Positions 34,024-62,060 of a stretch of DNA of 64,000 nt are shown here, in pieces; the first letter of the stretch is position 1; each line of letters begins with the position of its first letter. The DNA lies in the NCBI GenBank assembly GCA_965649825.1, contig OZ287699.1, positions 186,001-250,000 on the forward strand, written 5' to 3'. The translations under genes were made by a program, and so were the position numbers. Source of the DNA: Penicillus capitatus. Its lineage: Eukaryota; Plantae; Chlorophyta. A model generated the notes under the pieces. The model had not been told where the DNA came from, ran no database searches, and was given only the letters and a program-made list of their open reading frames with translations.

Positions 34024-36356
34024 TTAGATGGCGGCAATAGAGTTGTAAAGATCGAGATAGGACTGAACAGAAAGGTCCCACGAAAAATCGAGTCCCATGT
34101 TGTTGACGGAGATCTCTGTCCACTTTTGAGGTTCTTTCTGGAACATCTCTAGAGCGCGTCCAAGGCATCCGTCTAACGAAGCATCGTCCACACCCGTAAA
34201 CCCAAATCCATTTCCTAAACCGTCAATCACATATTCTCCAAAAGAGTGAGAGAGTGCGACAAACCGCCGTCTCCATCCAGGTCGATGTCATGGACAGTGT
34301 CAGCCAGTCCTCCAGTGAGACGCACGACAGGCAATGCACCATAGCGCATTGCTATCATCTGTGTCAGGCCACACGGTTCGAAGAGGGACGGCACCAAAAC
34401 GATATCCGATGCAGCGTAGATCAAATGGGCCAAGGCATCGCTATAGAGCATCAGGAGCCGGACATTGGGATCGTCTTTGAAAGCGTTTTCGGCCATGGAA
34501 CGGAAATCCCCGTCGGCATGGCCTGTGCCCAGCAGCACGAATTGACTGCCAGATTCGTGTGTGTGATAGACGCCGCGTCGGATGAGGTTGATGCCTTTCT
34601 GTGGGACGAGTCTGGAGATACAACTGACGAGCGGCTTCTTTGATGTGACTTCCAGTCCCAACCCCTGTCCTCCACGTCCCCCTCGCCCAGAGAAGGTCGA
34701 CAGATGCCCTCTTACTTTCTGTAGGTACTCTTTGCAGATGGCTTTGCCTTCAGGAGAAGCTGCAGAGAAGCTGGCTGGAAGGAAGATGTCGTTCGACGGA
34801 TTCCACTCGTCCACGTCAATTCCTAAGACCCATCCACCTGTCACATCACGAACCCGACAGCAGGGCATGACCGTTTAGAATGCCATGCATTTTGGAACGA
34901 ATTTCCGGTCGGCCGAGCAGTCCTCTCAGCCACCCAGCTGCCCCTCCATCCAGCACCTCCCGTGCATACGTCGGTGACACAGTTGTGACACAGTTGGCAT
35001 AGGTCATGGCCCCCTAGAACTGCTCAATAAGTAACAGACGATGGAAGAGTGTGACCGACCTTCATGAGACTGAGACGCTCAGGATTGTGACCGATCGTGC
35101 GTTCGTCCAGTGCTTTCTCCACTGTTGCAAAGACCTCCCCTGGTACGCCTACCAAACAACGGCAATCCATCATCCAGTCACACACCATTCGTCAACATAG
35201 CAGATTACCAGTGAAGCTGAATTCTTCCTGTCGGCATTCTCCGCTGTTATCCATGTTGTGAATAGTGAACATGATTCTCGGAATGGTCAGTACATCGTGA
35301 TGGTATCTGCAAAGCACAATGAGGCAGGTTACCTCTTCGCAGATTGCATCTCTCACCTCTCCCAGAAAAGCATCGAAACGGCGGCCGTCTGCCATTCATG
35401 AAGATGCAGAACGTGCGGTTGCCGATGCGTCACTTTCAAGAACTCCAAACAAGCTCTGTCGTACACAATAGAGTGACCAGTATGTCACACAATCTATCTC
35501 AGACCTACCTGCAGAAATAGAGATAAGCTTCCGCTTCGTTATATCCACCTCCGTAAATCCGACTGCCTTTGAAGAGATTCGTTTCTGCCCAATCCGGCCG
35601 GAGAAGAAACACCTGCACACCTAACGTCACATCGCATTCAAAAGAGTGAGACGAAGCTGACAGGAAGCGGCAACACCTGCAATTTTGCCTTTCCATACAT
35701 GTGTCTTCAGTGTCCCCATCATCAACTGACCGTCCCAGTTGTACCCCTTGGGACAGTCAAACGTCGTCTCTTCCTCTAAGTACTGGATCTGCTCATTGGG
35801 AAGGCACTCGTAGTACGGCAAGCAGACTTCCACCGTGTGGCCTCTCGCCAACGAGGCGCGTGCCAATCCCGTCACCACATCGGCCAATCCTCCAACCTGT
35901 CACATCACGCTCACTCTTTCGATTTGACGTTGGCAGCTCGACCTTCGCAATCGGTGCCATTTCGGCGGTCATGTGAACAACGTAGAGAGATTTCGCATCG
36001 GGTGGATCTTTCATAACAATCTCGGCTCCTCCCGTTATCAACGTTGTCCTCTCGACGCCGTGTTTCGCTGCTCGTGTCCAAAACGGTGGGCTCTCGTTTG
36101 GCGAGGGCCACTGGATCCCATCCCTCTCTTTCTTGACCGGACTCCGTTTCTTCGCCCCCGTCTTCTTCGGTGCCGTCGCCGTCAGCGTCGCGATCTGCTT
36201 TCGCAATTCAGCGTTCTCCCGACGGAGCCTCTGCAGCTCTGACGAAAGATTCTCCCCTTCCGCCCGACATCGAACGACTCCCCGAAGACCGACGCCCTTT
36301 CGACAGGTCACCAGCCGAGGACGCACCTCGACGAGACGCGTCGTGCTGAGTTCCAT
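34024..36356 (-). CDS. Soluble starch synthase (GT5), coiled-coil N-terminus, SS4-like; plastid transit peptide
   Basis: VHMTAEMAPIAK|VGGLADVV, FTIHN, RLVPQKG, VPSLFEPCGLTQMIAMRYG, TGGLADTV, GNGFGF. Confidence 0.95.
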
Positions 36357-36491
36357 CTGCACGACACAGCGCTTCGCACTTCATCGTATCTGTACGACAA
36401 CGCGGGGCGTCTTTGACTGTTCACGATTTTCCTTGCACGCAGGGTGACTGCCTCTCTGTGGAGACGACTCTCTGTCGCCTCCCATGCAGCA

Positions 36492-38135
36492 ATGGATCGA
36501 CGAACGTTGCGTCTCAAAGAAGTGACATCTCCTGCGTCCCCTGTGCCGTTCTGACCCTCCGACTGCAGCTCACGGAACTCAGAGTCGATGTCAAAGACAC
36601 GCAGAAGCTGAACCTTGCCGTAGAGCACCACCTGCCTGTCACCTCAAATCACTCCTGTCCATAACGCAGCTCAAGAGCGGCGAAGCCGAAGTGTTCGGTG
36701 CAGAGTTGGGATTGGGAGAGCGGCTGACCATTTCGGGCAAACGCCTTGCTGTCGGTGCATTTCTCACTCCATCGCTCTCTTCAGATCATCGTTTGCAGGT
36801 CTTTACCTATGCGGGATGTACGATCGAGGTCGAGGGTCACGCAGAGCTGCTCTACGAGTCCAAAGACACCCCCATGCAGTACTACCTCAACCTGCACCAT
36901 GTCCTCGATACGCGTCGGCTGGGGGCCAAGGAGGCAGGACGTCACGGTCCACGCGTCATCATTGTTCGCCCTGCTTCTCCGCAACGCCTCTCGCTACGAT
37001 CTCTTCTTCGAGGTCGGCGGGACGGACCGTGGCAAGAGCACCGTTTCGAAGATCCTGGTCAACTACGCCGTGCGCATGGGCTGGTCGCCAGTCTATGTGG
37101 ACTTGGATATGGGTCAAGGGAGCATCTCGCCTCCAGGGACGATTGCGGCGACGCCGGTTCAGTTGCCGATCACGATGGAAGATGGATATCCACTGGAAGT
37201 GCCGCTGGTCTACTTTCATGGACACAGCTCACCGGCCACCAATCCAGATCACTACAAGCTCCTGGTCGAAAGCATGGCATCGGTGCTGGAGAAACGCGCG
37301 GCCTTGAATCCGGGTGCCGCTCATGCCGGTACCATTATCAATACGATGGGATGGATCGAGGGACTCGGCTACGAATTCCTCATGCATTCCATTCTCACAC
37401 TTAAAGTCACAGGAGGCGATGTTAAGTGGACAGAGTGAGTGATGTGACGTGTAGGCCGATTTTGTACTGGTCTTGGATGACGATGCACTGTATCGATCAC
37501 TCGATACCGATCTTAGACGTAAGACACGAAATGCAAAAGAGTGAGAAGAGTGAGAAGTTGAATACAGGGGCATCATTGGAGTCCGTTCCGGTCTTGTTAC
37601 ACGTTCCAAAGTCGACGGGCATCGAAGTGCGGAACAAGAAGCAGCGGGCTGCCGCCAGAGCACAGCAGGTGCGGAATTATTTCTACGGCATCGGCAAGAA
37701 TCTCATGCCCCACCTTCAAACATGTCCCGCCTCCGAACTCCAAATCTTCAGGTACGTACACCACACCGCACACCTACGTTTCTCACGTACACGGCCAGAA
37801 TCGAACGGCAGCGCGGGATGGCCAGCCACATGGAGCGACCGGAGTGGTTGGGCATGACGCCGGTGAAACCGAGCAACGAAATCTTTAACTGTCTCATCGC
37901 TGTCTCGCACGCACGTAACCACGATGAGTTACTCTACTCAAGCGTTGCTGGGTTTATTTACATCCAGAACGTCCACGTTGATGTATTACCACCATCTCCG
38001 TTATCGCTCTCGCATGTGAAGTTGCGTTTCTAGGCGGAGGGCAACGGCACGGTGACATTTTTGGCTCCTTCTCCTGGCCCATTGCCAGGAAAGCTCCTTC
38101 TGATCGGCTCGATCGAGATTCTGAACCTCTCTTAA
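36492..38135 (+). CDS. CLP1: Clp1 polynucleotide 5'-kinase / mRNA 3'-processing factor
   Basis: GEAEVFGAEL, AVFTYAGC, DTPM..Y.NLH, P-loop VGGTDRGKST, LVNYAVR, DLDMGQGSISPPG, GTIINTMGWIEGLGY, APSPGPLP. Confidence 0.95.
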
Positions 38136-39622
38136 CACGGCTGGATGTGACGGAAGACATCGTGGACGAATCCCGTCGGATAACGTTGCCGACGACGTTG
38201 TCGATCGGAGTTGTACATATCCGGGGTCACACATCGATCCCCTGAATCGATCGTGACATTCCACGTTTGCTTTTGACTGTAAACTGTCAATGTGTACGCT
38301 GTGGCTCTCAAAATCGCAAACTGCGAGAGGAACTCTGTGGCAAATGCCCTCCGACCATCGATCTGTCGACGAAACCCTTCGATTCCCTCTTGTTCTCTAA
38401 ACAGCCTTTGTCTCGGCAATAGAGCGAGGCGCGGGGATCGTATCGTACGTGTATTGCTGGAGGGTGCGATGGACAGTGGGGAGGAGATTGGCGAGGTCGT
38501 TTTTGAAGGGAATCGTCAGATTGCGGCCTTCGATGAGATGCGCGAAGTATTCTTTCCACGGAGAGGATTGTTTGAGGATTGGCGTGTTGAAATAGATCAG
38601 TCGTGAGAATCGATCACTCCAGGCATTGCCATCGACATCCAACACTGCCATGTATCGACTGAAATCATCCATCGACAGATACCTCTGCAATGGCGCCACC
38701 TGTGCCAGAATCCGTCGGATCTCCGAGTCGCTTTTGTCCAACTTGGAGATCACACAAATCCGGTATTGAGTGAGAATGTGTAAAAAGAGTGAGATCTTAC
38801 TTGGACATACTTTGTGACACCGACATCCAGTACATGCGGATAGTCAATGCCCATCATTGCCAGACGGATGCGTGTGACGTTCATGACATTTGACGAGGAG
38901 AGCGTGCGATTGCCTGTTGTGGATCCGCGCCATACTGCCTTGGTCACGCGACTGCTGTCGAGTGGGTATTGCGCATCGAGACAAGTCACAAATTTTTGGA
39001 GCTGTGCAGGGCCAAAGGCGTTATTGAAAGCTGCGTGGGAAGGAATCGTAAATCCACCACGTGCACCGCAGCGATCGTGAATGCTGTAGGCGATAAAAGG
39101 CAATCCACACGGAGTGATGTCGTCGATCGAGAAGACAGCCTCTGTGTCTGGGATGTCGAACACGTGCAGTGTGAACAGGAGCTGGTTGAGCAATGTTCCG
39201 ATCCTGTCACTGTACATAAGGCATCGCACACCTTTTCTTGTACTTTGAGGACTGTACTTTCTAAGCTTGTGATCCAAGGGGGAGTTCGGATTCTCTTTTG
39301 TGTAAAGTCGATTGTGGATGATCTTGAACGTTATTGAGTTCTGCCGAATGGCGAGGGCTCCCTCCAAATCCGACGGCAGAATGTCGCCTTTCCAACGGTA
39401 GTAAGCGTAGGGCGGGCCATCAGGATCGATATTCTGATGCCTCTGTCGAAAATGCGCTGTATACGCTTCCTTTTGTTTCCGAGCGAGGCGCCGACATGGA
39501 GACTCGACTCTGGCGCCAAGGAAAGGAAGGGATGGTGCCTGTAACAACTGTAGCAATGATAGAACGACCACCGCTGCAAGCAGAACGCGCCCTAATACAA
39601 CAAAACGCTTTACCCGAGCCAT
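38132..39622 (-). CDS. Glycosyltransferase family 90 (CAP10-like), type II membrane protein
   Basis: N-terminal TM; DIPDTEAVFSIDD, KAVWRGSTTG, R.RLA, LDVG, LDVDGNAWSDRF, PWKEYF. Confidence 0.85.
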
Positions 39623-39753
39623 ACCGTGTCCCAGAGAACAAGGCAGTCCTTATCACCTGTGTCAGTCAGATCATCCGTCACATCATCACCTCGCCGCGGT
39701 CGACGCCACGGACAGCGTGTTTGGAGCAACTCGGCTGCCGAGTTCTTCAGGAA

Positions 39754-41512
39754 ATGCACCTACCCCATGCCTTCTTCCGTGCCGTTCAGCTGTCTGGACT
39801 CTACCAAGACAGCAAGACCTTCATCGACCGGCCGGCTCGATACATCTACGACGATATGGAGTCGCGCTGGGCGACGTTTCACCGCGACTGGGATGGCTCA
39901 ACATCCTCTTTGCGTCACTTCGTCGAGCACGTCACATCACCCGAAGGCTCCGACCTGATGCAGGTCGTGCCGGACGATTGGCGAGAGAAAAACGAGTCCT
40001 GGCTCCGCGACGCCTGTCTGGATGATCATCTCCGTCAATGGGCTCTCTATCTGCATCGCATGTGGAAACAACTCTGCCGAGTCACACGCATTTCGCCCAA
40101 GGAGGCATCGCAGCATTCGCTCCTCCCCTTGCCTCGGCCGTTCTTCATCCCGGGAGATCGATTTCGCGAGATCTATTACTGGGACTCGCACTGGACCGTA
40201 CTCGGATTGATCGTTAGCGAGATGTACGACTCGGCGATCGACCACATCGAGTGCTTGCTCGTCTTGCTCGAGCGCTACGGCTTCGTCCCGAACGGCGGAC
40301 GGCATTACTACACCAACCGAAGTCAACCGCCCCTCCTCAGCATGACGCTGCGTGCTTTGTACGACGAAGCTCTGCATCACGTACCCCCGATCGGCACTCC
40401 TTTCTCACTCATTTTGTGTGAGATTCCAGGCCGAGGAGAAAACGCAGAAAAGGATGGCGGCCGTCGTTCAACGAGCGCTGCCTTTGCTCATACGCGAATA
40501 CCGTTTCTGGACCTCCCCTCCACACGGCGTCTCGGCAAAGGGCCCGTCCTCAGGGAAGACGCACGCACTGTCGCGATACTATGCTCAAACAGAAGATCCT
40601 CGGGCGGAGTCTTACCGTGAAGATCTGGCGACGCTCGAGTCCATGTGCGACGATGAGAAGCGACCCGCCGGTGCGCTCTTTCGCGACATCGCTACGGCGG
40701 CGGAGTCTGGACACGATTTCTCTTCGCGATGGTGTTCGGATCCGACCAGACTGGACACCATCCAGACGACCCGTGTCCTTCCTGTAGACCTTAACGCCTT
40801 TCTCTACGCCCTCGAATGCAACATTGCATACTTCGCCGTCGCACTCGACGCCTGCGATGGTCCCGCAATAGCCGAGAGCTACGACGAAGCTGCTCGACGC
40901 CGACAAGAAGCTTTCGACGATCTCTTCTGGAACGCTGTCACCTATCAATGGCGTGATCTCTTGTGTGAGACCTCCCCTCTGTAGCCTTCCCCTAACGCGT
41001 ATGCTTTCCTAGTGTGCAATGAGGAGGGCGTCGCTGCGGGTCGAGATGGATACTTAGTAAACCTCGTCCCTTTGGCGTGCGGTATTGCGCCGCCGGAGCA
41101 GATCGCTGTGACCTCTATGACCCATGCCCTGCGTCAATCGCCTTTGCTAAGTCCAGGTGGATGCGCCACCTCGCTCGTGGATTCCGGACAGCAATGGGAT
41201 GGGCCAAACGTCTGGCCGCCGTTGCAATGCCTGATCGTGGAAGGCCTGATGGCGCTCGAGAAGACATCCCCGTCGTGCGGCGCTCAAGAGCTTGCTTGCG
41301 AAATCGTCCAACGATTTCTTAACAACGCCTATCAAGGCTACCAACATCATGCGTGTATGTTTGAAAAATATCACTGTCAGAACATCGGCCGTCCGGGTTA
41401 CGGAGGAGAGTATCCAACACAGATGGGTTTTGGATGGACGAATGGGGCAGTCTTGTGGCTGCTAAGACTGCGTTGCCGTATGGACAACAAATCACTTTCG
41501 CTTGACCCATAA
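39754..41512 (+). CDS. TRE1: Alpha,alpha-trehalase (GH37)
   Basis: DSKTFID, PGDRFREIYYWDS, GFVPNGGRHYYTNRSQPP, AAESGHDFSSRW, PVDLNAFL, QQWDGPN.WPP, MFEKY, GGEY..Q.GFGWTNG. Start codon uncertain. Confidence 0.95.
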
Positions 41513-41791: not shown

Positions 41792-44700
41792 TTATTCTCT
41801 TCTCTTCTGCCGCTGCCGCTTTTCTGTAGCTTCTCCTGAAGGCTCTCTTTCAACTTGGCAGCATTGATGCTTGATAGGAGCTTCACCTACAGCATTCTCA
41901 CATCCACATATCATTCGTATGGCATACAGATCATACGCGCTCGATGGCTCTCTCTGGGATGTACTCGGCCTTCTCTAGACGAAGTTTGACGATGATCAGC
42001 TGATCGTATGCCACGAGAAGACGGTAGACAAAGAGGCCGACCATGAAGACGTTCGTGGCGATAATGATGATGCTGAGCACCACTTTGCCTCCATACGAGG
42101 TGTTGGGATCTCGGAACACGACGCCGCTGTAGAAGATGAAGATCGACGCCAGCAGGGAGAGGGATTCGAGCAGATTGAGCGAGGCGTATTTGTAAGGCTG
42201 TGCCAGAAACTGAGCAAGCAATGCGAAGATCAGAATGCCCAGAGCGATGGCCGACTGCAGATTGGGCCCCAAGTCGTATGCATAGACGATCACGGCCGCC
42301 ATGGACACCTTCCTCAGCATGATGATCGACTCCCAGAACACGAACTTCGCCTGATACGACTGATAGACAAATCCATACGTGTTCAGGCACTGCGGCTCGA
42401 GCACCACTCCACGGTGTCTCTTGTAGAGCAAGAAGAGGGCTAAGCCGATGGGTATGCCTGCCGTAATGATGAGCAGTCCAGGAATGCCGAGAATGCCGGC
42501 GACGAGGCCGTGCGATCCTTCCCAGCACACGTGCTGCGTGTCTTCTGCCCAGTAGCTGTCACGGGCTGTGGCGTAATCGGCATAGCGCTGGATGGTCAAC
42601 GGAGCGTCTGGATCTTCGGGATTCGGATCGTCCAGCGATACACAGTTGACAATCCGCATGAGCATCTCCGTTATCGTATCGTAGGCGAAGAAGATACCGA
42701 CGATGAATCCGATGATGGCACGGCGTCTGGCGTTGTCTTTATCGTCGATGTGCTTGATGTGATTGACCAGAATGTACAGCGCTGTTAGGACGAGGGGAAA
42801 GAGTGTCCGCAAGACGATGCCGACGATGGTGCGATCATCAAGATCCTCAAACAGACATTCCATTGGAGCAAAGGAGGCTCCGCTGGAAATGCTGGAGACG
42901 GAATCTAAAAGCAGCAATGTGTGGGCAGCGCTCGGCAAAGAGTGATAGCGTGCCTTCGATGACGAGAAGGAACCTGATGGATCGTGTCCAGGAGGCATTG
43001 ATGCCGACACCCACGGCTGTGATCTGAAAGAAATTGGTCAGAATCTACACGACATCGATGATAAGAGTGAGAAAGTGTGAGGCTCTGAGCAGACTTTAAT
43101 CGTTTCGGAGACGATCTCTGCTGCCATGATATGATCCACATTCAGATCCCCAGAAGTGGCGTACTTCTCCGTCAACGGACTCTGGCTGCTGGGCGATTGG
43201 TCCCCCGTCACATCATCCCCTTCTGAGGATGGACTACACACAACACGTCTTGCTCATGAGCGGTAAAGGCAATCTTCCGGGGTACCCTCCAGTATGACTG
43301 TCTGTCGGCTGCCGTGGCATTGACGAGCGCAGACCTCTGCCTCTTTGTGAAGGACGCATTCCGATCTGGCTTTTGCCGCCCGTCTTCATTCCTCCTCTCG
43401 CTGTGTTCATCGTCAATGCACGCACCAGTCGCATGTCATGCATTTCACGGATGGTGTCGAAAGCGGCTCTGGCAGTGCTGACGAGCAAAAAGAGCGTCCA
43501 GAGACAGACGACGCCGATCAGAATGGCCGTGAGCCACACCTGACGGCACTCCACGCACTCTCCATCGATGACATGACCATAGCCCTTGACACAGGATCCA
43601 CAGAGCGGCCCTGTGTACTCTTCTGCACACTGCGGGTATTCCTCATTGGACACCGTGGCTTGACTGGGCACCAGGGAGGCGGATTCTTTGTAGTAAGCTT
43701 CCAGCCGTTTGCGGCGGCCCTTGTACTGACAGGCCTCTTCAAGAAGGCACTCGTGCATGATGGGCGAGTAGGGTGTCGAATGCCAGTAGCCCGACACCGG
43801 AATCAGCACAGCCTTGCCACTGCATCGGGCATTGTCAGGGCATCCATCGCAAGGATAGCTGTAATTAAAACCAAATTGCTCTTGATCACACGGATCACAG
43901 ATATGCCGCGTATCATCGATCTCAATCTTCGATTCTCCAGCAAAACATTGACGGATCGAGATTTGCTCAAAGACGACGTCAGCTTGTCCATCACGAGGGA
44001 CAAAAGTAAGGGAGTGGATAGAAGCGTTGCCGATCGCCGTTGCCTTGGAGAAAACGACGCTGCCGCTCTCGGCGGTGGCGACACGTTGCCCGGAAATGGT
44101 GACGGAATCGATGGAGACAGACATGTTGGCATCACTGATTCCACCACGCACGGTTTGGCCGAAGACGTCCTGTACGTCCAGCTGGATCGTCGGCAGATCG
44201 TCTCCACTGTTGTGTCCTTCAACCAGCAAAGCTCCGGCTGTCACATCGGGTCTTCGGATCACTAGAGACGCAGCACGGGTGGCAATGTCCTCGCCAAAGC
44301 CTCCCTTTTCGACAGCGTTCGCGGACAAGGCATTCCACTCGGCTGGCGAAATGCCAGACAGCTGAACAAAACGACCGTTCTCTGAGGCATCGACGTAGGC
44401 CGATACTGGATGCGAGACAAACAGCGCGCCGCCAGCTGCCGTGGCTTTATTGGATGTGAAGGCGGTGGACGAGATGGCGAAGCTCTTGCACGGCTTCGAC
44501 GTGAGCGACTCTACTGCTGTGCCTTCCGATTTACATGTTGCGATCCAGTCCTCCTCCTCAGGCGTTGCTGCGAAAACGGCACCTCCGACGAAGGCCTTGT
44601 TGCGCGTCATTGTCACATCGGAGATCTCGATCTCCACGGGCGCCTGTTCCGGTACCTGCGTAGCGAGCACGCACACAGCGCCGCCGCCGCCAGGATGACA

Positions 44701-46713
44701 GGCGTCAAAGCTCTCGGGATCCAACAGGACGTCCTCCACTGTGCTCTCTGGTGTCTTCTCCTGCATTAAGGTTCTTAAGAAGAGCAGTCGACGACCGAGG
44801 GCTGTCGTTTCGATCTGGACATCCGGGAGGTCCAGTCGATCAATGCCGGCATCTCTGATCGTCCGCACCGCTTCGTTACCTCGGAAGACTGCTTGGCGAA
44901 TGCGCACGAGGTTGTTGATAGGACTGGAAGGCCGAACATGGATGGCTCCTCCCGCCAATGCCCTGTTCCGAACAAACGCATTTCTGCCGTCATCTACTGA
45001 GTAGAGCTCGAAATTCGAGACGCTGTCCACGTAGACAGCGCCGCCACGCCGTGCGGCATTGCTTTCGAAGTAGTTCGTCTGTAGCGTCGTCTGTCCAGAA
45101 GGAAGAGAGGCCAGGAGACACAGTCCTCCGCCGTTTCGGCCAGCACGATTTCGATAGTATCGCACACCTTGCAGAACAACCTGCCCTGCTCCCAGGAGAA
45201 ACAACCCTGCCCCATCCAACGCCGCATTCTCGGTGAAGTAGACGTCCAGGTCGATCCCGTCGAATGGCCCTTTGAAGAAGACTGCACCAGCGCCATTGGT
45301 CAACATAACGCCGCCGCCGGCCGTAGCTCGGTTTCGGTTGAAACGCACATTCCGCAGACGTGCCTACATAGAGTGATCACACAGGTATTGATGCGACGGA
45401 TAGGACGTCTTACGGAAATGACGTTGCGCATCAGGATCGCGCCGCCAGCCAGTTGGGCCTCGTTGTCTTCGAACTGACTGTTTTCGATGCTGATCTCCGT
45501 GACGAGTTCCGTCACGGCGTGAATCGCCCCGCCATAGGAGGCCGTGTTGTTGCGGAAGACGCATCGATCGATTCGGGCACGACTCAGGACACTCGTAAAT
45601 ACGACGTAGATCGCCCCTCCCGCTTCCAGATCGGTCACACGATCTTGCGACGCATCGTCCACTGAGGTCACACGATTACGAACGAAACTGCATTCCACGA
45701 TAATCACGTCGTCGTTATCGCTGACGTAGATGGCGCCTCCGGCAGGCACGGCTGTATTTTCTTCAAAGTCCGTTTTCTCGATCCGGACGCTGGAGTAGCC
45801 GTGGACATAGATCGCCCCTCCCGATGGCGTTGGGGACGGAAACTTGAGAAAGACGGCGTTTTCCAGAGGGGCGCCGTTGCTTAGCGTGAGTCCCGTCGGA
45901 TCTTCGCCGCCAGATACATCTCGATTGCGTCGAAAACGGCATTTCTTGATCGAAACGCTTGCAATTGTCCCGAAAAAATTCTCCGTCAAGCCTGCCGCGA
46001 TGGCCCCTCCGGCAATGGACGCTTCGTTCTCCTCAAACAGCGTTTTCTTGACATTCAAACTTCCAGCACCGTCGACCAGAATGCCACCGCCCGTCGATGC
46101 TTTATTTCGACGAAATTCGCAATTCTCGACCACTGCCTGTGTACCGGCACCGACGGTTAGTCCCCCTCCTTTGACATCCCTAGCATTCGGATCGGCAACA
46201 TTGTCAAGGAACTGGACTCGGGTGAAATTGACGCGAAGGTTTCTGAAACTGTACACGGTATCGATATCGAAAGGATCATATACGACATCCGGATTCAACA
46301 GCGTCACGGCACCGCCGAGGCATTCTTCAAACGTCAGGTTGACGACATCCACCCCAGTCGCCCGAATCTCCACACGGCCGTCATCTCGACAGCGAATCCG
46401 CGTCGCTGTGGCGTTCGCACCGATTAGACGCACGCCGCGACTCTGAATGCTGAGCACTGTGTCGAGGGAGACGCTCTCGACGGCGAACAAAAACGTAGTG
46501 CGCGGTGTCGCCTCAGCAATGCGTTGGGCAAAGTCGCCGGCATCGATCTCATTAATCGTGACCGTCTCCGAGTTGGCACCTATTTAAAGCACGCTCATCT
46601 TGCGAGCGACATTCTAGCATCGTGAAGGACGGACTCTGCGCAGCGGCGTTGCGGCTGAGTGCGAAGAGGGTGCAGAGAAGGAGAAGGCGATAAAGTGGAG
46701 GTCTTGTTTTCAT
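41792..46713 (-). CDS. Large membrane protein: signal peptide, PMP-like GGA[IV]/FxxN beta-helix repeats, Cys-rich region, multi-TM C-terminus
   Basis: Repeated N.A..GGA[IV] motifs; C..C..CPDNARC, GYWH, GPLCGSC; YGFVYQSY..KFVFWE..MLRK plus several hydrophobic segments. Five short introns restore the frame. Confidence 0.85.
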
Positions 46714-47576
46714 TGCGTTCGCTTTGCGCAAGAGCATCTGCGAGGCAGTGCGAAAAGCGAGGTCGTCCATACGGTCGAACCACGTCAAGAAAGCCGCACC
46801 CACTATCCGCCGTCATTTCAATCCACGTGATCCGCTGGCCATACGACAGCGACGTCTGATGCGTCAGACGTCGCTGTCGGCGTCAACGATCTCACTCTTT
46901 CATCGAGATGCCGTTCATTGTCGAGCGCGCTGTCGAGACGATGTGACATGTCCTATGGGTTCAGTTACACAATCACGCGATCGCTTCCTGAGCTTGAATG
47001 TATGATGAGCCGTTTTCGCAACAGAATGATCTCAATGCACCACCACTGAGCGTTTCCAATGCCCCCCATTATCCATTTGCCGAAATTATTCCCTTCTAAA
47101 CAAGGGCAAGCGCTAAACAATGGAATTCCGACACTCGAAGTGCAAAACATTCACATTGTTATTATTGATGGGTTCGATTGATATCACTCAAGTGCGGTCG
47201 TCATGCCTCTTTGGCTACAGCTTGCATACGCAGGTGACCACCGACAGAAATAACAGATTATCAGGCAGTCGAGCAACAACGCCATCTGCCGCTTTATGCC
47301 CCCTCACATCATGGCAGACCCGGATGGAGTACGTCATGCCCCATGACAGCTAAGCCAACGGCAAATGGGCTCTGTCATAGACGGCCCTCATTATGTCAAT
47401 TGCGTTCGTAAAAAAGTAATGAAAGTGTGCTATACTTAATGAATATCCTCACGTCACGTCATGTCCCATGAGTGTGTGATCCATCATCAACTTTATCTCA
47501 ACTCAATTTTGAAAGTACTAGACATCCGGTGGGCAGTGTGATTGGTAAGGAAGGGGAAATGATCTCTGGCAGAGCA

Positions 47577-49995
47577 TTATCGACAATCCGCAAGCAAATG
47601 CAGCGTTGTGTCCTTGATCACTCTTCTCTTGTTACCCAGACGCTCTCCTCGTCCACGTAATCTCAAACGGGTGCGCGGGTGGATGATCTTACAGTAGATG
47701 TGGTAGTACAGATCCACTTCCCGACGAAACGGCGCCCCCAAGAGGACTCTGAGCTGGATCGCTAGTTTGAGATATCTTTGCTCGCCGACGCCGAAGATCG
47801 ACGTCTTTGTGCGCATCTTTTTGGACAGAAATTTCGACGGCTGCAGTAAAGCCACGATATCGAGAGCGTCATGTTGACGACTCTGTACGGCTTCCAGTTC
47901 AACAAAATCCGAATCGGGTGGCGCAACGCGAATGGCGACGACGCCCTCGACGGAAAAGGGGATGGTATCTTGCGTCGTGATGCGGAGATGAAGACGCGCA
48001 TCCTGCTCGAGACGCAAAACGTGGACCGGATGTCCAGGCAAGGAGTCATCGTAGAAGCGCTCCGCCATTTCGGCTTCTCTCAAATTGAACGGAAAATCTG
48101 CCGAGCTGCTGCTCGAGAAATGCTCCGCCTGGAAAGTCAGCGACGTATGGTTGTTGAAGATCTCGACCCAAGTCTCCTCCGGCCAACGACAGACATCGCC
48201 CAGATTGAGATCGCTCTCGGATGGGATCTGCAGAGACATCTGAGCAAAGCGACAACGACAGGGAGTGTTTACGGTTGTTGTTCGAGAGTCCATGGCCCGG
48301 CTGCCGTCGATGGCGCATTCGAAGAAGACGTCCTCCAATGCTCCGGCAACTGTTTGTCGTTCCGCTGGGTCGGTACGGAGCAGATGGTAGATAAATCGCA
48401 GACCATCTCCACGGCCTTCCTTGCGATCGATCGAAGAGTCCTTGTGTGTCCTCTCTCTCGCAGAGAGCTCCTTCATGTCCCTCTCCACGATCGCCTGAAC
48501 GCCCAATGCATTGCGGATACTAGAACCTAAGCCATACGTTGTTTGAGATCGGCGGCGATCGGACGATCGAGATCGAGTGGCATACGTGTGAGAATTTCGA
48601 AGGTCATGATTCCGAAGGACCACATGTCTGCAGCAGATGGAAGTTGTGCTTGAGCGACGTCCTTGTCAACGGCGCGGAGGATCTCCGGAGCCGCATAGCG
48701 ACTGGTGCTGCGAGGCAGAGTGGCCGGTTTATCCAAAAAAGAAGCGTAGTCCAATCCGACGATTTTCCAGGAGAAGTCCGATTCGAACCACATGAATTTG
48801 GATGGGGTTAGGTTCCCGTGGGTTATGTTCAAGCTATGGAGGTACTCTAAGGCTTCAAGGATCTAATCACACATTTCGATGTTCACTGAGTGAAAAGGGT
48901 ACGGTAAAAGAGTGAGAACCGCGTAAAGGATCGTTCGCTGTTCGGCGATGGTCGTGCGTCTTGAGGCCAGACGTCGCGTCAAGGTGTAGGAACCGCGTTC
49001 GAAGACCAAACAGGGCGGAAACCCTTCTTCGTCCTCGATCACATCTAGCAGTCTGGCCACAGGAGACGCACGTTATCGGGGGAATGTGTGAGATAGGTCG
49101 TGTTACTGGCAGACGAGGGAGCTTCGATGCGTGTAACGGCAGATTCGGACAGCGTTCTTCCACGGTTGCGTCGTCTCGGTATAGAACTTCAGGAAGACGC
49201 GTCTCGATGTCTTCAGCTCCGTCGCGTAGCGGCAGTTCGGATTGCCCGGAATGCGCTCATGTGCGATTCTGTACCTACAGGATGGCGGCGCCATTGCGTC
49301 AGTCACACAGCGACGCATTGACGGTACCTGTTGGCGAAGATGACGCCGCCGTCCAGAGCCTCCAATCTCGCCAGAGGGTCGCTCTTCGACGACGAAGGTG
49401 GTCGCGTCGACGGTGGCGACGAAGGATCGTCTTCGGATTCGGTTATCGGATCGATGGACGAGGACGGACGTGTCTCGTCGATCGAAGACGTCGAGTCGAT
49501 CGACGAGACGATCGAGATCGGCACCGTGTTCATTCCGACTGTTTTATCGTCCACTACAAACATCTCCTCCGTCTCATCGAATGGCGGCGAAGGAGGACGG
49601 ACTGGAGCTATGGGTGGCGAAGAGACTGTCGTCTTCGGAATCCGAATGCCACACCACGGAGGCGTCATCCGAGAAGCCTTGAGAGTTGGAGGTGCATGGC
49701 TCGCGACGGTTTGCTCGCGGCGACCGGCGTCTGGGCCATCTCGGACGTATGGAGAATTTCTGACTCGCTTGGCGAAACACTCCGGAAAGACTCGTTGCCG
49801 TTGTCGATGATTTGGTCGACGCCTGTTGGTCGCCAGACGCATGACGACGCGTGGCCTTGTCCTTGAAGGCGGACCAGAATCTGCTAGTCTTTTTGGACCG
49901 AGGCAGTTTGTCTGCAGCACCATACACTCCATTTCGCGATGCTCCATGGAGACGGGGCTGGAGACCGTACTTAAGCTGTGGGTTATGGAGGACAT
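47577..49995 (-). CDS. Protein-kinase-fold protein (predicted pseudokinase) with Ser/Pro-rich N-terminus and unknown C-terminal domain
   Basis: VFLKFY, CLVFERG, LEYLHSLNITHGNLTP, YAAPE, DMWSFG, LL..DP..R.TV..AL. Start uncertain. Confidence 0.8.
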
Positions 49996-56359: not shown

Positions 56360-56635
56360 ATGCAGCGCGTTGCCTTAACACGACGACCTCTCGTCGTACG
56401 CGCCGCCGAAGATGCCAAAGGAGGCGCTGCCCCTCCGAAGCCCGTTGTCGGTCCGCCTCGTGGCTCGTTCGTCAAGATCCTACGCCCCGAGTCTTACTGG
56501 TACAACCAGACGGGGAAAGTCGTCTCCGTCGATCAATCGGGCATCCTCTATCCCGTCATCGTTCGGTTCGACAAAGTCAACTACTCTGGCGTGTCCACCA
56601 ACAACTTCGGCCTGAATGAAGTCGAAAAGGTCTGA
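56360..56635 (+). CDS. psaE: Photosystem I subunit IV (PsaE) precursor with transit peptide
   Basis: [53 protein letters not shown]. Confidence 0.98.
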
Positions 56636-56905
56636 GACGACGAAGATCATGCAATGCGGTTTTGTACGGATGATCATTTTTGAAGCTAGCTCGCTTTAAA
56701 CCTCTGTCCCCTTCGTGCCGCGTGATGTGACAGCAAGAGTGACCGATTATTTAAAAGCCATAGACCTTAATTAAAATCACACAACATCCATTGACAGATC
56801 CGTTCGTACTCCAGCACGACAGCCACGCAGTCATCGAGATATAACCAAAACAAGCAGAATGATCAGTGAGAGATGGACGAGAGTCATTCAATGGGGAATC
56901 ACTAT

Positions 56906-57945: not shown

Positions 57946-58820
57946 CTTCGCAACGAAGAAGTTCTTTTCCTGCCCACGAGAAACGCAGACATTCGGCGAA
58001 ACATCTTGGCCGACGGAGAGATTGGTACTTGGTAGAGATATCAGGCAGCGGCGGAGGTTGATGTCTTTATGATGGCACCGAACGACTTTGTTCGAAGGGC
58101 AGCTCTAGTTAAGTGACAGACCAGAGTAGTATCTGAATTGTTTGCAGCGCACTGACCAACTATGCGTTCTGAACACGCGTGGTGGTTATATAGCAGGCAT
58201 GTCCAGACCGTCGAGGGGCGCTGCATTTGCCTAGCTGTTTGTGGACCGTCGGTTCAAAGAGCGAATGAGAAGAAGCGCAGAAAGCTCGACCGTTGTTGAG
58301 GACTGATGGAAGAGTTGGTTAGGGGTCTGGATGTGACAGGTGCGGGATGGAGCGAAGGAGATACAGCGACGCAGGCCGCCGGCACAAAACTACTACTAAC
58401 TGCAGGGAACGAAACGGATATCGGCCCAGTGCTCGGTCCATACTGCGACAGTCGGGCCGCCTGCGTCAGAGCAACATAACAGCACCTGTCGTCCATACCA
58501 CATCCACCAAATCCAATCCGCCACATCCAACGCATCTACGTCTCGGGGGCAAGCGATGTCAATACTTGGTGGACCGAGATACCCACCCCTTTATCGTTCG
58601 TTGAAGCTAGCCACGCATTGTATCCGTCGTCTTTTGCCTTATGTTACGAACAACGTGATGGCGGCGCTTGTGTCATCTGGCGGCGCTTTTCGGGGAGAAA
58701 GGCAAAAGACATTGCATCGCGCCATTTGTTTAGAATGACGATTATTCGATGTCCTTCATTTCGCCCCCACGACGACCTCACTGTCTTCTGACATGGACGC
58801 GTGGGCAGTCTTTGAGACGT

Positions 58821-60049
58821 ATGGACGTTATCGTTGGCGGCAAGAAACGCATGAAACGCCATAAGCGATCACATTTTGTCGTCGACACGGGTGCAGGTGC
58901 GCAAGGCACGGTAGCGGACTATCTTGTGTTTGGCGAGGCCCTCGGGTTCACGGTCGATGAATCGCTCAAACGTCTCGAAGCGAAGGCGTATCCTAACAAA
59001 CTCGAACTCAATGCGGAGGACAAGGCGGCGATCCAAATGTCCGTCACGTTGGAGAGAATTCATATCATCGGATGACATCTCTGCCGATGCGTCGTCAGGT
59101 TCCGAGAACGGGAGGAATTGCGTGCGAAGCAGACGGAGGAGATGGAGAGCGCCATCGGTGATGTGTCGGCGTACGATGAGGTCATGGAGAGGATGGGTAT
59201 CAGTGCAGATGAGAGACCGATCACCACCACACCTGACGCAGGTGCGAAAACCTCATTCTGGCGGCGCAACAGGAATATTGGCACACGACGAGGAGATCAG
59301 AACGATCTGTGCTGCAGCGCGGTCAAAGGGCTTAGGGACACACATCGATCTCGATGAAAACGAAGACCATCAAGCGGGTCATGACCCGCTGGAAGCTGAG
59401 ATCGACGAAGGTCCAGTCGCCATCGCAATCGCGATCGTTTTTTCCGAGCTTTGCACGGCGCTGTGTAGATATGGACTGGAATGCTATGACAGGAGGCGTA
59501 CAAGATTGGGAGGAAGAATTTTTTGGCCAGGAAATGGATGAAGAGCCGATGAGAGTGATCAGAAGGTCACATCACACAGCTGTCCCTCAGAAGAAGAAGA
59601 AGCCTGTCACACTAGCAATAAAGAGACCCACTCTTCTAGGGGAGAACGTGCTAGAGAATGGGCACATAAAGAAAGGTGAGGTCCTTTACTCTGTGCTCTC
59701 TTCTGAACTGGCGTGATCAATTTCGAAGCCGCCAAAGACAAGCGCAAGAAAACAGCAAAGCCGATTGCTCCGAAAAGGCCGCCTATGCATTTCGAAGACC
59801 AGGAAGACACCATACGCGCCTCTGAGCCAACGGTAGGCAGTCACATCATATCAGAGTGATGTGACGTCTCTTCTGGGCACGCTTCCGCAGGAAGGAAGAA
59901 ACGCGCCGCCGCCGCCCTCGGCGAAAAAGGTCCCCTTCATCACTTCGCAAACATCCGCCAATGTCGTCCTTTCAGGTACTCAAGCCAAAAGGAGAAGTGC
60001 GATTGCGGCCAAAGCCCGGGAGGAAGGGATATTCGAACACGTCTTTTGA
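58821..60049 (+). CDS. Hypothetical charged protein (multi-exon), probably nuclear
   Basis: GT-AG introns join an open frame from MDVIVGGKKRMKRHKR to KAREEGIFEHVF*. No recognised domain. Confidence 0.6.
59840..59865. repeat. Perfect 9-bp inverted repeat GTCACATCA-n8-TGATGTGAC inside a 58-nt intron
   Basis: Read directly; intron 59833-59890. Confidence 0.9.
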
Positions 60050-60342
60050 TGGTGACGGATGGGACAGCCGCTGAGATTTTTGATTAACGACGCATTCGTG
60101 TCCGTTTCATTGAAAGAGCGCGGTCGATTCGGCGCTTTCTTCGTTACTCTTGAATGCCGGCTTTCGTTTTCTGTCTCTCGTCACTCTCATTTCCCCGTTC
60201 ACGCTCTTTCCTCCCCTCTCGGCCGTCGTCGTCTCTTTTTGGTTGCATGTCCGACGGCTTTGCGCCTTTTAAGAAAATCAAATTCTCGTTCCCCATTCGA
60301 AGAGATCACACGTCTTTTACTAGCAGGACCCTTCACGCGACA

Positions 60343-62060
60343 ATGACGGACCAACATATCTCTGGACATATGTATCGAGTAATGGCCTGTCTTTTCATAG
60401 AGGCCAAATGAACTTTTGGACGACGGTTAGGTGCCGGGGTATATGGTATGGGATCACACTTTTCGGGTCCCGTTGAACTGGAGTGAGAAAAATGGAAAGG
60501 AGATTCAGCTATTTGCGAGAGAAGTAGTGTCTCCTGGCAAATCTCACACACAGCAGCCCTATCTACTATACTTGCAAGGCAGAGAATCGCACGCTCGGTG
60601 CAAAAGAGTGAGAATGCAAAGATAGGTGGACCTGGATTTGCGGCAAACTTGCCGATCGATGGAGGATCGTGGCTCAAAACAGCGACCAACTATTTTCGCG
60701 TTATTCTCATGGATCAGCGCGGAACAGGAAAGTAAGAATGCATCGCGTCAAAAGAGTGAGAAATGAGTGATGCTCACAAGACAGATCAACGCCCGTGACA
60801 TGTTGGAATCTAAAGAAGGTGGGCACAGCTGAGGAACAAGCGCATTATTTGAAGCACTTCCGATCCGACAGCATCATCCGCGACGCAGAATTCGTTCGTA
60901 AGACAATCGTGCCACGAACGACGCAGAACGGTCGCTGGAGCATCTTGGGACAATCTTACGGAGGATTCTGCTGCGTTCACTACCTCTCCGCTGCACCAGA
61001 CGGTAAGCCATCGACCGGCGGACACCATCCGTGATGCTGCGGATGGGTACAGCCTTGAGTGAGGTGTTGGTAACGGGAGGCATTCCGCCGGACATCACAC
61101 TGAGCAATTCGGCAGACGCTGTGTACGAACATACCTACGAACGCGTCATCACACAGAATAAGAAATTCTATCAGCGGTACCCAGGTACTGACTGCTCAGG
61201 AGATCGCGATGGGTCGTCTGCTGAGGGCGTATGGGATGGATAGGTGACGTGGAGGTCGTGCAGAAGATTGTACGTCATCTCATGTCTCAGTCAGATGGCT
61301 TCATCTCGTTGCCCTCCGGTTCTCGACTGACACCACGCAGTCTTCAGCTGCTCGGTTGTTTGGGACTGGGGTACGCTGGTGGGTTTGATCGATTGCATTA
61401 TCTATTGGAATCGGCCTTCGATGGCAATCGACTGAGTTATCGCTTTCTTAAGGTCACACGATCTCTCACACCTGTCACATCATGTTCACCATCGCCGAAA
61501 TGTAGAGCTATGAGTCTTGGATGAACTGGGAGACCAATCCGCTGTATGTGCTGTTGCATGAATCGATCTACAGTCAAGGACCGGCGACGCAGTGGGCGGC
61601 GCATCGGGTCAGGGAGAAGAAGTTCAGTGAGACGTTCGACGCCGTCTTGGCCACAAACCAAAATCGCCCAGTGTACTTTACGGGCGAAATGGTCTTTCCT
61701 TGGATGTTTGACGATTTCAAGGAGCTCGCTCCTCTGAGAGACACTGCCAATGCCTTGGCTCAGATAGACACCTGGACACCCCTCTACGACCTCGAGGTTC
61801 TTTCGCAGAACGTCGTCTACGCAGCGTCCGCGACATACTACGAAGTAAATGATCATCGGCGAGAATGTGTGACCTCATCATGTGTGAGATGTCAGGATAT
61901 GTTTGTGGATTTTGATTTGGCGCAGAAATCGGTTCAGCATATCAAAGGACTGCGTCAGTGGATCACGAATGAGTATATGCATTCGGGGCTGCGAGACGAC
62001 GGGAATAAGATTCTCGAGAGGCTTATTGGAATGACACGCGAATCCGTCTTAATACAATGA
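60343..62060 (+). CDS. Proline iminopeptidase (alpha/beta hydrolase, S33)
   Basis: LLYLQ|GGPGF, MDQRGTG, HFRSDSIIRDAE, WSILGQSYGGFC, NPLY.LLHESIY, FTGEMVFPWMF, W.TNEYMHSGLR. Confidence 0.95.

Follow-up and report, generated by a model that had tools for sequence, protein, structure and literature searches.

Why should one short word recur, in both orientations, inside the very short introns of unrelated genes of this alga? The word is the 8-mer AGAGTGAG, or its reverse complement CTCACTCT, and in the window (the whole 64,000-nucleotide stretch of DNA analysed here) it occurs in 17 exact copies, both strands counted. Dinucleotide shuffles of the window contain a mean of 2.7 copies and a maximum of 8, with none of 100 shuffles reaching 17, and an order-3 Markov model predicts 2.0, in agreement with the earlier note, which had counted at least 15 copies against about two expected. 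The excess over a Markov background holds at order 3 but largely disappears at maximal order (15.4 copies predicted); this is attributed to enrichment of the 7-mer sub-words themselves (AGAGTGA, 32 against 9.3 expected; GAGTGAG, 27 against 7.0), a consequence of a true unit that exceeds 8 nt. The copies at 17363 and 31702 lie within a 98%-identical duplication of 300 nt and thus represent one event, so that the number of independent copies is 16. All of the positions first reported stand except 31703, which is 31702, and the copies at 684 and 46891 had been overlooked.

Genes were mapped at positions 33,506–64,000 (33.5–64 kb, the annotated half) with the aid of a sister species (84.5% identity), intron borders being predicted by comparative gene finding and protein homology. 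This single 30-kb stretch contains 45 introns with a median length of 51 nt, bordered by GT-AG with one GC-AG exception. Introns make up 7.8% of the annotated half, yet 11 of its 12 motif copies are intronic (P = 7 × 10−12), with densities per kb of 4.6 in introns, 0.09 elsewhere and zero in exons; a single copy falls in the 10.9 kb of other non-coding DNA, promoters included. The earlier placement of almost all copies in introns of 45–70 nt is therefore borne out in the annotated half. The individual sites and related elements are as follows.

684–691, minus strand: unclassified copy just upstream of the ORF 751–1404; the plus strand reads GTCTCACTCT.
About 17356–17399: 98% duplicate of the intron at 31695–31738, with a copy at 17363–17370.
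28386–28393, minus strand: unclassified copy; a paralogous site at window positions 80–90 reads TTTCACTTTT.
29101–29108, minus strand: unclassified copy, which may lie within a candidate 94-nt minus-strand intron at 29052–29145, ending CTACTAAC...CGCTAG.
31695–31738, plus strand: 44-nt intron, with an exon–intron conservation pattern and a 2-nt indel; antisense copy at 31702–31709, 6/8 identical in the sister species.
34215–34264, minus strand: starch synthase intron 9, 50 nt; antisense CTCACTCT (8-mer 34243–34250, plus strand) and a second unit AGAGTGCG at 34251, the block CACTCTCTCACTCTTTTGG being identical in the sister species.
35621–35676, minus strand: starch synthase intron 2, 56 nt; antisense copy (8-mer 35643–35650, plus strand), conserved at 8/8 positions in the sister species, with GATGTGAC next in sense, 5 nt before the 3′ splice site, forming the composite TCACATCGCATTCAAAAGAGTG.
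35897–35942, minus strand: starch synthase intron 1, 46 nt; sense copy AAAGAGTGAG (8-mer 35910–35917, minus strand) ending 13 nt before the 3′ splice site and followed by CGTGATGTGACAG; splicing out this intron restores the conserved K-VGGLADV.
37406–37454, plus strand: intron of a Clp1-like gene, 49 nt, GTCACA...TGATGTGACGTGTAG; sense copy 37432–37439 ending 15 nt before the 3′ splice site, with GAGTGAGTGATGTGACGTGTAG identical in the sister species (the gene finder gave 34 nt from 37421; 49 nt was chosen from the lower conservation of 37406–37420).
37519–37567, plus strand: intron of the Clp1-like gene, 49 nt; tandem sense copies 37538–37545 and 37547–37554, the second ending 13 nt before the 3′ splice site, a spacing that survives four substitutions in the sister species.
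38742–38800, minus strand: 59-nt intron of the gene at 38397–39622; antisense copy 38786–38793 (plus strand) beginning 7 nt past the 5′ splice site, with a second unit CTCACTC next to it; AGATCTCACTCTTTTT is conserved and the adjacent bases are deleted in the sister species.
43045–43094, minus strand: 50-nt intron of a beta-helix/PMP-repeat membrane protein gene; antisense copy 43064–43071 (plus strand) with an adjoining unit AAGTGTGAG.
46891–46898, minus strand: the sole copy outside mapped genes in the annotated half, in unannotated DNA upstream of the PMP-repeat gene; 6/8 conserved in the sister species, with GTCACATCG 38 nt upstream on the same strand (46940–46947; the plus strand reads GATGTGAC).
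48863–48919, minus strand: 57-nt intron of a kinase-like gene; antisense copy 48909–48916 (plus strand) beginning 3 nt past the 5′ splice site.
59840–59865, no strand assigned: compact palindrome in unannotated DNA, GTCACATCA-TATC-AGAGTGATGTGAC, comprising an AGAGTG core and both arms, which are conserved in the sister species.
60579–60625, plus strand: 47-nt GC-AG intron of a prolyl-aminopeptidase-like gene, the removal of which restores ...PYLLYLQGGPGF...; sense copy 60605–60612 ending 13 nt before the 3′ splice site, a spacing retained in the sister species, where the box is AGAGTGCG.
60732–60784, plus strand: 53-nt intron of the prolyl-aminopeptidase-like gene; sense copy 60753–60760 and a second unit ATGAGTGAT ending 13 nt before the 3′ splice site; the box of the sister species has GTCACATC directly beside it.

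Relative to transcription, six of the 11 intronic copies in the annotated half are sense and five are antisense, so that there is no strict sense-strand bias, and the starch synthase gene (nine introns) does carry both orientations, as had been noted, with a sense copy in intron 1 and antisense copies in introns 2 and 9. Significant information is confined to positions −2 to +8, which defines an 11-nt consensus, AAAGAGTGAGA, that is identical for the sense and antisense copies. This box is present in about a fifth to a third of the ∼50-nt introns and frequently forms tandem double units (37538/37547, 34243/34251 and 43064/43073). Because the same 11-nt consensus is found in both orientations, the box cannot be one strand-specific splice signal, as the earlier note had argued; orientation is nevertheless tied to splicing geometry, as described below.

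Comparison with the sister species indicates that the box is under selection. Motif copies are on average identical at 7.45 of 8 positions, against 5.67 of 8 for other intronic 8-mers, and identity in motif columns is 93.8%, exceeding both the 87.7% of exons and the 69.6% of the remaining intron sequence. Identity of at least 7/8 is found for all 11 intronic copies and for 31% of control intronic 8-mers (P = 2.4 × 10−6), and about 18 of the 44 perfectly conserved intronic blocks of at least 9 nt hold either the AAAGAGTGAGA box or the TGTGA[CG] family. Since the box is better conserved than coding sequence, it appears to be a working part of the intron, and a passive footprint is excluded. On this comparative evidence, the box is a selectively maintained component of the ∼50-nt spliceosomal introns of this alga.

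The two strands of the box occupy the intron differently. In the purine form, the distance from the end of the box to the 3′ splice site is 13, 15, 13, 13 and 13 nt (P about 2 × 10−4 under uniform placement), and the spacing is retained in the sister species in four of five introns despite substitutions; in the sister orthologue of intron 35897 it is 20 nt instead of 13, and in that of 60605 the candidate branch A is replaced by C. The pyrimidine form shows no fixed distance to either splice site (19–46 nt to the 3′ site and 3–26 nt from the 5′ site) and occupies the C-rich 5′ region of the intron or its centre. GAGTG is confined to relative intron positions 0.4–0.8, and for CACTC 15 of 17 cases fall at 0–0.6. 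The box is always turned with its GAGA end towards the nearer exon. The intron halves are themselves mirrored in composition, C reaching 34% in the 5′ half and G and T each 29% in the 3′ half. A related TGTGA[CGT] family is sense-biased (TGTGAC 10:2, ATGTGA 9:1) and lies in the 3′ part of introns, with TGTGA[GT] in other introns 5–7 nt from the 3′ splice site. The fixed purine spacing and the orientation-dependent placement imply that RNA-level constraints act on the motif. A fixed short distance to the 3′ splice site, as expected of a branch point, is seen for the purine form only, and the restriction to the sense strand also expected of one is absent, with six sense and five antisense copies of the same 11-mer; by its position, the purine form looks like a branch site. 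GUGAG differs from the canonical yUnAy branch site.

The motif-bearing introns also resemble one another outside the box. With the core held fixed, eight pairs score at least 17, against 0.42 expected, and none of 300 shuffles reaches eight. This similarity crosses orientations: intron 43045 matches the reverse complement of 60732–60784 at 28 of 35 aligned positions, and introns 35621 and 35897 form another such pair. Between introns 48863–48919 and 38742–38800 it is nearly full-length (score 19). The likeness of flanks among antisense-class introns might in part represent a common 3′ splice-region signal (TGTGA plus YAG). Inverted arms, GTCACATC and GATGTGAC, flank the core at 35621, 35897, 37406, 46891 and 59840, with most copies lacking one or both arms; TCACAT-N-AGAGTG occurs four times (0.42 expected) and AGAGTG-N-ATGTGA three times (0.57 expected), whereas the reversed arm–core arrangements are at chance level (preferred to reversed, seven to two). 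The GATGTGAC partner motif additionally has many perfectly conserved intergenic copies. In a fixed register the informative part is limited to 11 nt, and an nhmmer profile built from ten members retrieved one further copy at E < 0.1, that at 46891 (E = 0.028).

The borders of the 11 motif-bearing introns carry no consistent target-site duplications, the sole case being the 7-nt TCCAAGT at 38742–38800. No intron-sized indel distinguishes the window from a 99.35% identical strain and all motif-bearing introns are common to the sister species, so that there is no sign of recent mobility. Lineage-specific gain is accordingly not seen among the motif-bearing introns at this distance, but a neighbouring intron of the PMP-repeat gene (45364–45413), which holds the variant ATCACTCT, has no counterpart in a distant relative, where the orthologue (locus L005) is uninterrupted. 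The earlier suggestion that the motif is a footprint of intron-generating elements draws partial support from this intron and from the flanks that are alike across orientations, with the qualification that the footprint cannot be a passive one.

The explanation favoured here, tentatively and at somewhat less than an even chance, is that an old, short, introner-like repeat, spliceable in either orientation, left the box behind as its selected core. The intron bodies carrying the box would descend from one module of about 35–45 nt, sometimes with GTCACATC...GATGTGAC inverted arms, which would have inserted into unrelated genes, facing either way, before this alga and the sister species diverged, and could have been spliced out from both orientations. 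Both orientations would then be found because the intron bodies derive from one module inserted either way, and the box would have been kept because splicing can make use of it on either strand: the purine strand would supply GUGAG, 13–15 nt before the 3′ splice site, as a branch-site box, and the pyrimidine strand CUCAC and a U/C tract in the C-rich 5′ or central intron. The enrichment, the intron restriction, the two orientations, the conservation above exon level, the fixed purine spacing and the flank similarity are observations; the branch-site role and the mobile origin are what we infer.

A less likely alternative, in line with the dsDNA-binding or chromatin/linker motif that the earlier note had suggested, is that the box is a putative double-stranded DNA site for a sequence-specific protein, such as an intragenic regulatory, elongation/pausing or chromatin-boundary factor. 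The box would then lie in introns because these are the only non-coding room inside the genes of a compact genome, and its orientation would be filtered by what sense-strand splicing tolerates; were the purine form to lie in the 5′ half, its GTGAGA would strongly mimic a 5′ splice site, and this would explain the link between orientation and position. The identical 11-mer in both orientations, its conservation above exon level in each, as expected of an orientation-independent element, the frequent tandem units, as with dimeric sites, the constant direction of the GAGA end and the conserved intergenic copies of the GATGTGAC partner are all consistent with such a site. However, the near-absence of the box from other non-coding DNA (one of 12 copies in 10.9 kb, promoters included) would be an odd distribution for a transcription-factor site, a DNA-level role does not predict the tight 13-nt spacing and the site has no known binding protein.

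It is improbable that each orientation arose separately, as an RNA signal or composition effect in its own right, with the G/T-rich 3′ half hosting a GUGA-type branch or 3′ box, the C-rich 5′ half hosting a CUCAC or pyrimidine element, and the two being reverse complements by coincidence. The mirrored composition of the intron halves and the strong sense bias of the TGTGA[CGT] family in the 3′ part are in keeping with this proposal, as is the co-occurrence of TCAC and GTGA within introns (4 against 5.2 by chance), which is not above chance, so that the two forms behave as alternatives. An exact 11-nt reverse complement that includes the AA and A flanks would nevertheless be improbable for unrelated signals, the flanks are alike across orientations and the pyrimidine form has no positional constraint.

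The co-occurrence result also counts against the idea that sense and antisense copies pair as RNA, forming intron hairpins or bridges that loop out exons (exon definition or back-splicing), which is very improbable: although exon 2 of the starch synthase gene lies between a sense copy (intron 1) and an antisense copy (intron 2), and TCTCAC...GTGAGA pairs exist in a few introns (for example 40381–40429 and 38742–38800), the introns fold no better than shuffled controls (mean z −0.16, with three of 45 below −2) and most genes carry a single orientation (three sense units in the Clp1 gene, two sense copies in the gene at 60443–62060 and single copies in others). Chance, duplication or a functionless neutral remnant of dead transposon copies is scarcely credible and was rejected, since, despite the single duplication behind 17363 and 31702 and the 6/8 conservation of intronic 31702 and extragenic 46891, the shuffles (0/100) and the intron restriction (P = 7 × 10−12) exclude chance, the 11/11 copies at 7/8 or better against 31% of controls exclude a passive remnant, and only selection could have kept so many exact 11-mer copies intact while the introns diverged by ∼30% between the species.

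In wider terms, it is possible, though doubtful, that the box is one of two novelties: an intron-resident signal, acting as double-stranded DNA or as either RNA strand with its GAGA end to the nearer exon, that marks or helps to define ultra-short introns with weak splice sites, or the core of the smallest intron-generating element yet found to be spliceable in either orientation (∼40 nt), later fixed as essential. The very short introns of green picoalgae have previously been described without any conserved internal signal. Should an old repeat spliceable both ways have left the box as its retained core, the box would reveal the appearance of introner-made introns long after the burst that produced them and would serve as a sequence tag for dating intron gain in this lineage; if it is read on DNA, an element resident in introns would be defining introns or regulating genes at the DNA level.

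Among known intronic motifs, TTNGATYTG of Arabidopsis intron-mediated enhancement is likewise short and intron-enriched, and is thought to affect expression at the DNA level with a promoter-proximal bias; the AAAGAGTGAGA box differs from it in sequence and lineage, and we know of no positional link of TTNGATYTG to the 3′ splice site. In Trichomonas and Giardia a fused branch-point signal, ACTAACACACAG, lies close to the 3′ splice site and is strictly strand-specific. The purine form is similar in being an A-containing box at a fixed short distance (GAGTGA[G/T] at 13 nt), whereas here the reverse complement is equally common and has no fixed position.

The BOC1 small introns of Mamiellales are AT-rich and have been described without a conserved motif or branch point (PMC3491373, PMC3879977). 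The introns studied here share with them a length of 40–65 nt, their number per gene, a weak splice-site consensus and a green-algal host, but they are neither AT-rich (52.1% GC, compared with 54.3% in exons) nor motif-free, having two strongly conserved motif families, and the closest named PsaE sequences of this alga are not mamiellophyte. Amoebophrya introners carry 8–20-nt inverted repeats near the intron ends, interpreted as MITE-like (PMC7789003); unlike these, in which hairpins join the exon ends at non-canonical borders, the present introns show no hairpin tendency and have GT-AG borders with one GC-AG. Introners are known to insert in both orientations (PMC9860276), as the copies here are arranged (six sense and five antisense). 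The MITE-type introners of Micromonas pusilla and Aureococcus have terminal inverted repeats and target-site duplications (PMC9860276). Both would be spliceable after insertion in either orientation, and the arms seen in some copies here may correspond to terminal inverted repeats; either strand of CTGTCAC...GTGACAG arms would read GT...AG, and introns 37406–37454 and 35897–35942 provide examples of GTCACA 5′ ends and GTGACAG 3′ ends. The present copies differ in that target-site duplications are lacking, few copies are armed, no autonomous partner is seen and family identity is far lower.

The IE-C introners of Micromonas commoda RCC299 average 67 nt and contain a highly conserved box, GACTGACG, interpreted as a branch point (PMC3879977). 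Here the shared part is far shorter, an 11-nt core with weak flanks in a variable register, the introns are ∼50 nt long with the box in both orientations, and the copies are old (common to species that are 84.5% identical) with no sign of current mobility. Both systems nevertheless consist of short, repeat-like spliceosomal introns in unrelated green-algal genes, with a conserved internal box.

The 8-mer AGAGTGAG and its opposite-strand form CTCACTCT together occur 17 times in the window, in agreement with the earlier note, which had counted at least 15 exact copies against about two expected; dinucleotide shuffles give 2.7 (largest 8) and an order-3 Markov model gives 2.0. Copies 17363 and 31702 belong to a single 98% duplication, so that 16 copies are independent. 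An unbiased scan of all 8-mers in the window puts this family near the top for over-representation. The copies had also been described as nearly all intronic, which is borne out between 33,506 and 64,000: 11 of 12 lie in introns, which occupy 7.8% of this region (binomial P = 7e-12), corresponding to an intron density of 4.6 copies per kb, against 0 for exons and 0.09 for other DNA. An exact copy is present in 10 of 45 introns and a copy with at most one mismatch in 16 of 45. Copies 31702 and 17363 are inside a 44-nt intron, in the half of the window without comparative annotation.

Three related genomes were retrieved: a strain 99.35% identical to the window (locus L001), a sister species that is 84.5% identical (L002, L003 and L006, with L004 as its second haplotype) and was compared over window positions 33,506-64,000, and a distant relative (L005). 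Because codon bias is too weak for single-genome gene finding (test region 33-38.5 kb; window 1-34 kb), introns were mapped with a two-species dynamic-programming finder that rewards synonymous change and conserved GT/AG and penalizes frame-shifting indels. The finder recovers all nine starch synthase introns mapped by hand from protein continuity (e.g. ...APIAK joined to VGGLADV...), and clusters of alignment indels fall at the same positions. Its output was corrected by hand at two sites, 37406 and 60579; at the latter the GT-AG-only finder had excised a conserved exon segment (60529-60578) in place of a GC-AG intron. The final set of 45 introns has a median length of 51 nt and a GC content of 52.1%, compared with 54.3% in exons. 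A search with the trypsin-like ORF for extending the comparison to window 1-33 kb found its orthologue alone and, as the sister species is not collinear there, copies 684, 28386 and 29101 were left unclassified.

The window comes from the nuclear genome of a photosynthetic green alga. Besides PsaE it encodes a starch synthase, a Clp1-like protein, a trehalase (whose best named matches reach only 39-45%), beta-helix/PMP-repeat proteins, a Rad51-like protein and tandem trypsin-like paralogues. Located features are as follows.

56360-56635: nuclear PsaE with a short transit peptide; best named matches Elliptochloris (75%), Chlorella (67%) and Ostreococcus (65%), the closest not being mamiellophyte
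37406-37454: probably the Clp1 intron
60579-60625: 47-nt GC-AG intron holding copy 60605 in a prolyl-aminopeptidase-like gene; its excision restores PYLLYLQGGPGF
~58.3-59.9 kb, + strand: apparent multi-exon gene that the finder did not assemble
59840-59865: compact palindrome GTCACATCA-TATC-AGAGTGATGTGAC in unannotated DNA inside that apparent gene
~700-2200, 10500-11900, 16000-17600 and 30000-31500: four trypsin-like paralogues in tandem, identity 60-75%
17270-18600 and 31609-32866: younger segmental duplication following two of these paralogues, its first 300 nt 98% identical
2214-3659: long ORF containing a 48-nt tandem repeat at 2742-2933
22480-23460: ORF encoding a zinc knuckle and an aspartyl protease of retroviral type, a retroelement gag-protease remnant

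In the region matching the 2742-2933 repeat, a sister-species paralogue (L002, ~2320-2400) has a GC-rich coding repeat of another sequence (CCGGAGGC...). The copy number of a 26-nt minisatellite, GATTCGCTGATCGACGCAATGATCGA, is not the same in L003 (~7400-7600) and L004 (~7520-7610), which represent haplotypes or strains of the sister species. Comparison of L006 1-9231 with window 1-29000 shows no collinearity over the first 29 kb, the sister species having an NB-ARC/TPR gene where the window has the trypsin array, indicating a structural breakpoint at the left edge of the synteny block.

When 15 independent copies are aligned on their centres without gaps, information exceeds the 99th percentile of intronic controls at positions -2 to +8 only, which defines the unit as AAAGAGTGAGA; the consensus is identical in the sense and antisense classes. 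Tandem paired units are common (37538/37547, 34243/34251, 43064/43073 and 60753/60765). Identity to the sister species is 87.7% in exons, 70.4% in introns and 73.7% in other DNA, and reaches 93.8% in the intronic motif columns. All 11 intronic copies retain at least seven of the eight bases and five retain all eight, compared with 31% and 10.5% of 1,473 control intronic 8-mers (P = 2.4e-6 and 3e-3, respectively). The box and TGTGA[CG] dominate an unbiased list of 44 perfectly conserved intron blocks of at least 9 nt. With introns diverged by about 30%, neutral remnants alone cannot account for so many exact 11-mers. The box is not kept everywhere, with 6/8 bases in the sister species both at the 31702 intron and at copy 46891, which is extragenic. 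At box position 7 the sister species shows three A-to-C changes, but these are spread over both orientation classes, and no orientation-specific substitution pattern is therefore inferred.

The starch synthase gene does contain both orientations, as the earlier note had stated (sense in intron 1, antisense in introns 2 and 9), and the 11 intronic copies comprise six sense and five antisense. The proposal that the motif is not a strand-specific splice signal stands to the extent that a single such signal is excluded, but orientation is tied to intron position. For the purine form (sense AGAGTGAG), the distance from the end of the 3'-most unit to the 3' splice site is 13, 15, 13, 13 and 13 nt in five introns; under uniform placement so narrow a range has P of about 2e-4. 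Despite substitutions, four of these introns keep this spacing in the sister species; in 60732-60784 the indel falls between the two units and not 3' of the second, and in the orthologue of 35897 the spacing is 20 nt and is not kept. The pyrimidine form begins 3-26 nt past the 5' splice site, with 19-46 nt left between its end and the 3' splice site. Of 17 CACTC occurrences, 15 fall within the 5' 60% of the intron, GAGTG is confined to relative positions 0.4-0.8, and the introns themselves are C-rich in their 5' halves and G/T-rich in their 3' halves. The related words TGTGA[CGT] are strongly sense-biased, located in the 3' part of introns and often 5-7 nt before the 3' splice site, and thus behave as a true strand-specific signal. 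TGTGA[G/T/C] at 5-7 nt is seen in introns 38742-38800, 40381-40429, 61845-61895, 37406-37454 and 35621-35676 and may represent a second, very 3'-proximal branch-site class.

Motif-bearing introns are also alike outside the core. All-against-all local alignments yield scores of at least 13 that are 8-15 times commoner than in shuffles, with the excess in both relative orientations; with the 11-mer fixed and the flanks shuffled, eight pairs score at least 17 against 0.42 expected, and none of 300 shuffles reaches eight. The alignment of 38742-38800 with 48863-48919 spans nearly their full length, 43045-43094 agrees with the reverse complement of 60732-60784 at 28/35 aligned positions, and starch synthase introns 1 and 2 align once one of them is reverse-complemented. 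Several copies have inverted arms (CTGTCACATC...GATGTGACAG) around the core, (AC)GTCACATC upstream and GATGTGAC(AG/GT) downstream. TCACAT-N(0-30)-AGAGTG is found four times (0.42 expected) and AGAGTG-N(0-30)-ATGTGA three times (0.57 expected), with the reversed arm-core arrangements at chance. Judged by their sequence, arms of the form CTGTCAC...GTGACAG would yield GT...AG on either strand; introns starting GTCACA and introns ending GTGACAG exist. Support for similarity beyond the box is moderate: most copies have no arms, the position of the arms relative to the core is variable, and searching with a ten-member profile adds just one copy. In the sister species (L006), inverted repeats of ~60 nt at 901 (-) and 3093 (+), 2.2 kb apart, both include ...GGCAAAAGATGTG...AAAGAGAGTGAGACTC... 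and may together form a larger box-carrying element.

The most over-represented 8-mer of the window, missed by the earlier note, is GATGTGAC/TGATGTGA (31 copies, 4.3 expected), and GATGTGAC is enriched in the sister species too (29, 3.4 expected).

38144, 46940, 55688, 56119, 56724, 58330, 59566 and 62077: examples of GATGTGAC/TGATGTGA, which occurs window-wide

Intronic copies are sense-biased near the 3' end. Outside mapped genes at least ten copies are perfectly conserved, often as GTGATGTGAC(A/G)G, and conserved copies flank PsaE on both sides; the word may represent a promoter or terminator element, or a bZIP-like one (TGACGT).

No consistent target-site duplications were found. Over 20.9 kb, the L001 strain has no intron-sized indel relative to the window and differs by 131 SNPs and four 1-nt indels, none in the box. 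All motif-bearing introns are common to the window and the sister species. Intron 45364-45413 of the PMP-repeat gene (variant ATCACTCT) is missing from the L005 orthologue (1-2469), an uninterrupted 823-codon ORF with 58% identity; in this single case, therefore, intron content differs in the wider lineage.

Four explanations are incompatible with these observations: chance, a passive footprint, one strand-specific splice signal, and a hairpin at the RNA level. The suggested footprint of intron-generating elements thus fails in its passive form only, and an old introner-like repeat is the favoured reading. Box-bearing introns would have their source in an old short repeat, spliceable in either orientation, the core of which would now be under selection, with each strand working in splicing; the purine strand would most plausibly be a branch box lying 13-15 nt upstream of the 3' splice site. 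Because both the role as branch site and the mobile origin are inferred, an old introner-like repeat with its core kept for splicing on both strands is proposed tentatively, at somewhat less than even confidence. A double-stranded-DNA protein site, its sense-strand orientation filtered by splicing tolerance, would account for the orientation independence equally well, but it is a poorer explanation of the 13-nt spacing and of the absence from promoters, and appears unlikely. Two independent RNA signals, complementary by coincidence, would fit the mirrored intron composition; the identical 11-mer in both orientations and the cross-orientation flank similarity do not fit them, making this the least probable of the three. 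A 5' splice-site role (the box contains GTGAGA) is rejected as the box is internal in mapped introns and not at the donor, copy 28386 being a possible exception. Also rejected are intron hairpins or TIR pairing (mean MFE z-score -0.16; TCAC- and GTGA-type elements do not co-occur), exon looping via sense/antisense pairs as a general rule (starch synthase exon 2 alone fits), an in-frame stop or NMD trigger (TGA is present in the purine form, whereas the pyrimidine form is stop-free in every frame) and a snoRNA or other known RNA (no Rfam or tRNA matches in the window or related loci).

The closest described systems to the proposed introner-like repeat are the Micromonas introner elements, among them class IE-C (67 nt), in which a branch motif is conserved (PMC3879977), and MITE-type introners, inserted in both orientations, are also close (PMC9860276). 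For the small BOC1 introns of Mamiellales, an AT-rich composition and an absence of motifs are reported (PMC3491373); the window introns share their size but neither of these traits, and identity with this outlier chromosome is rejected on this composition and on the nearest named PsaE. Amoebophrya introners depend on hairpins (PMC7789003), which are not seen in the window introns. The box-bearing introns are treated as a probable variant of introner-type elements and not as a proven introner family.
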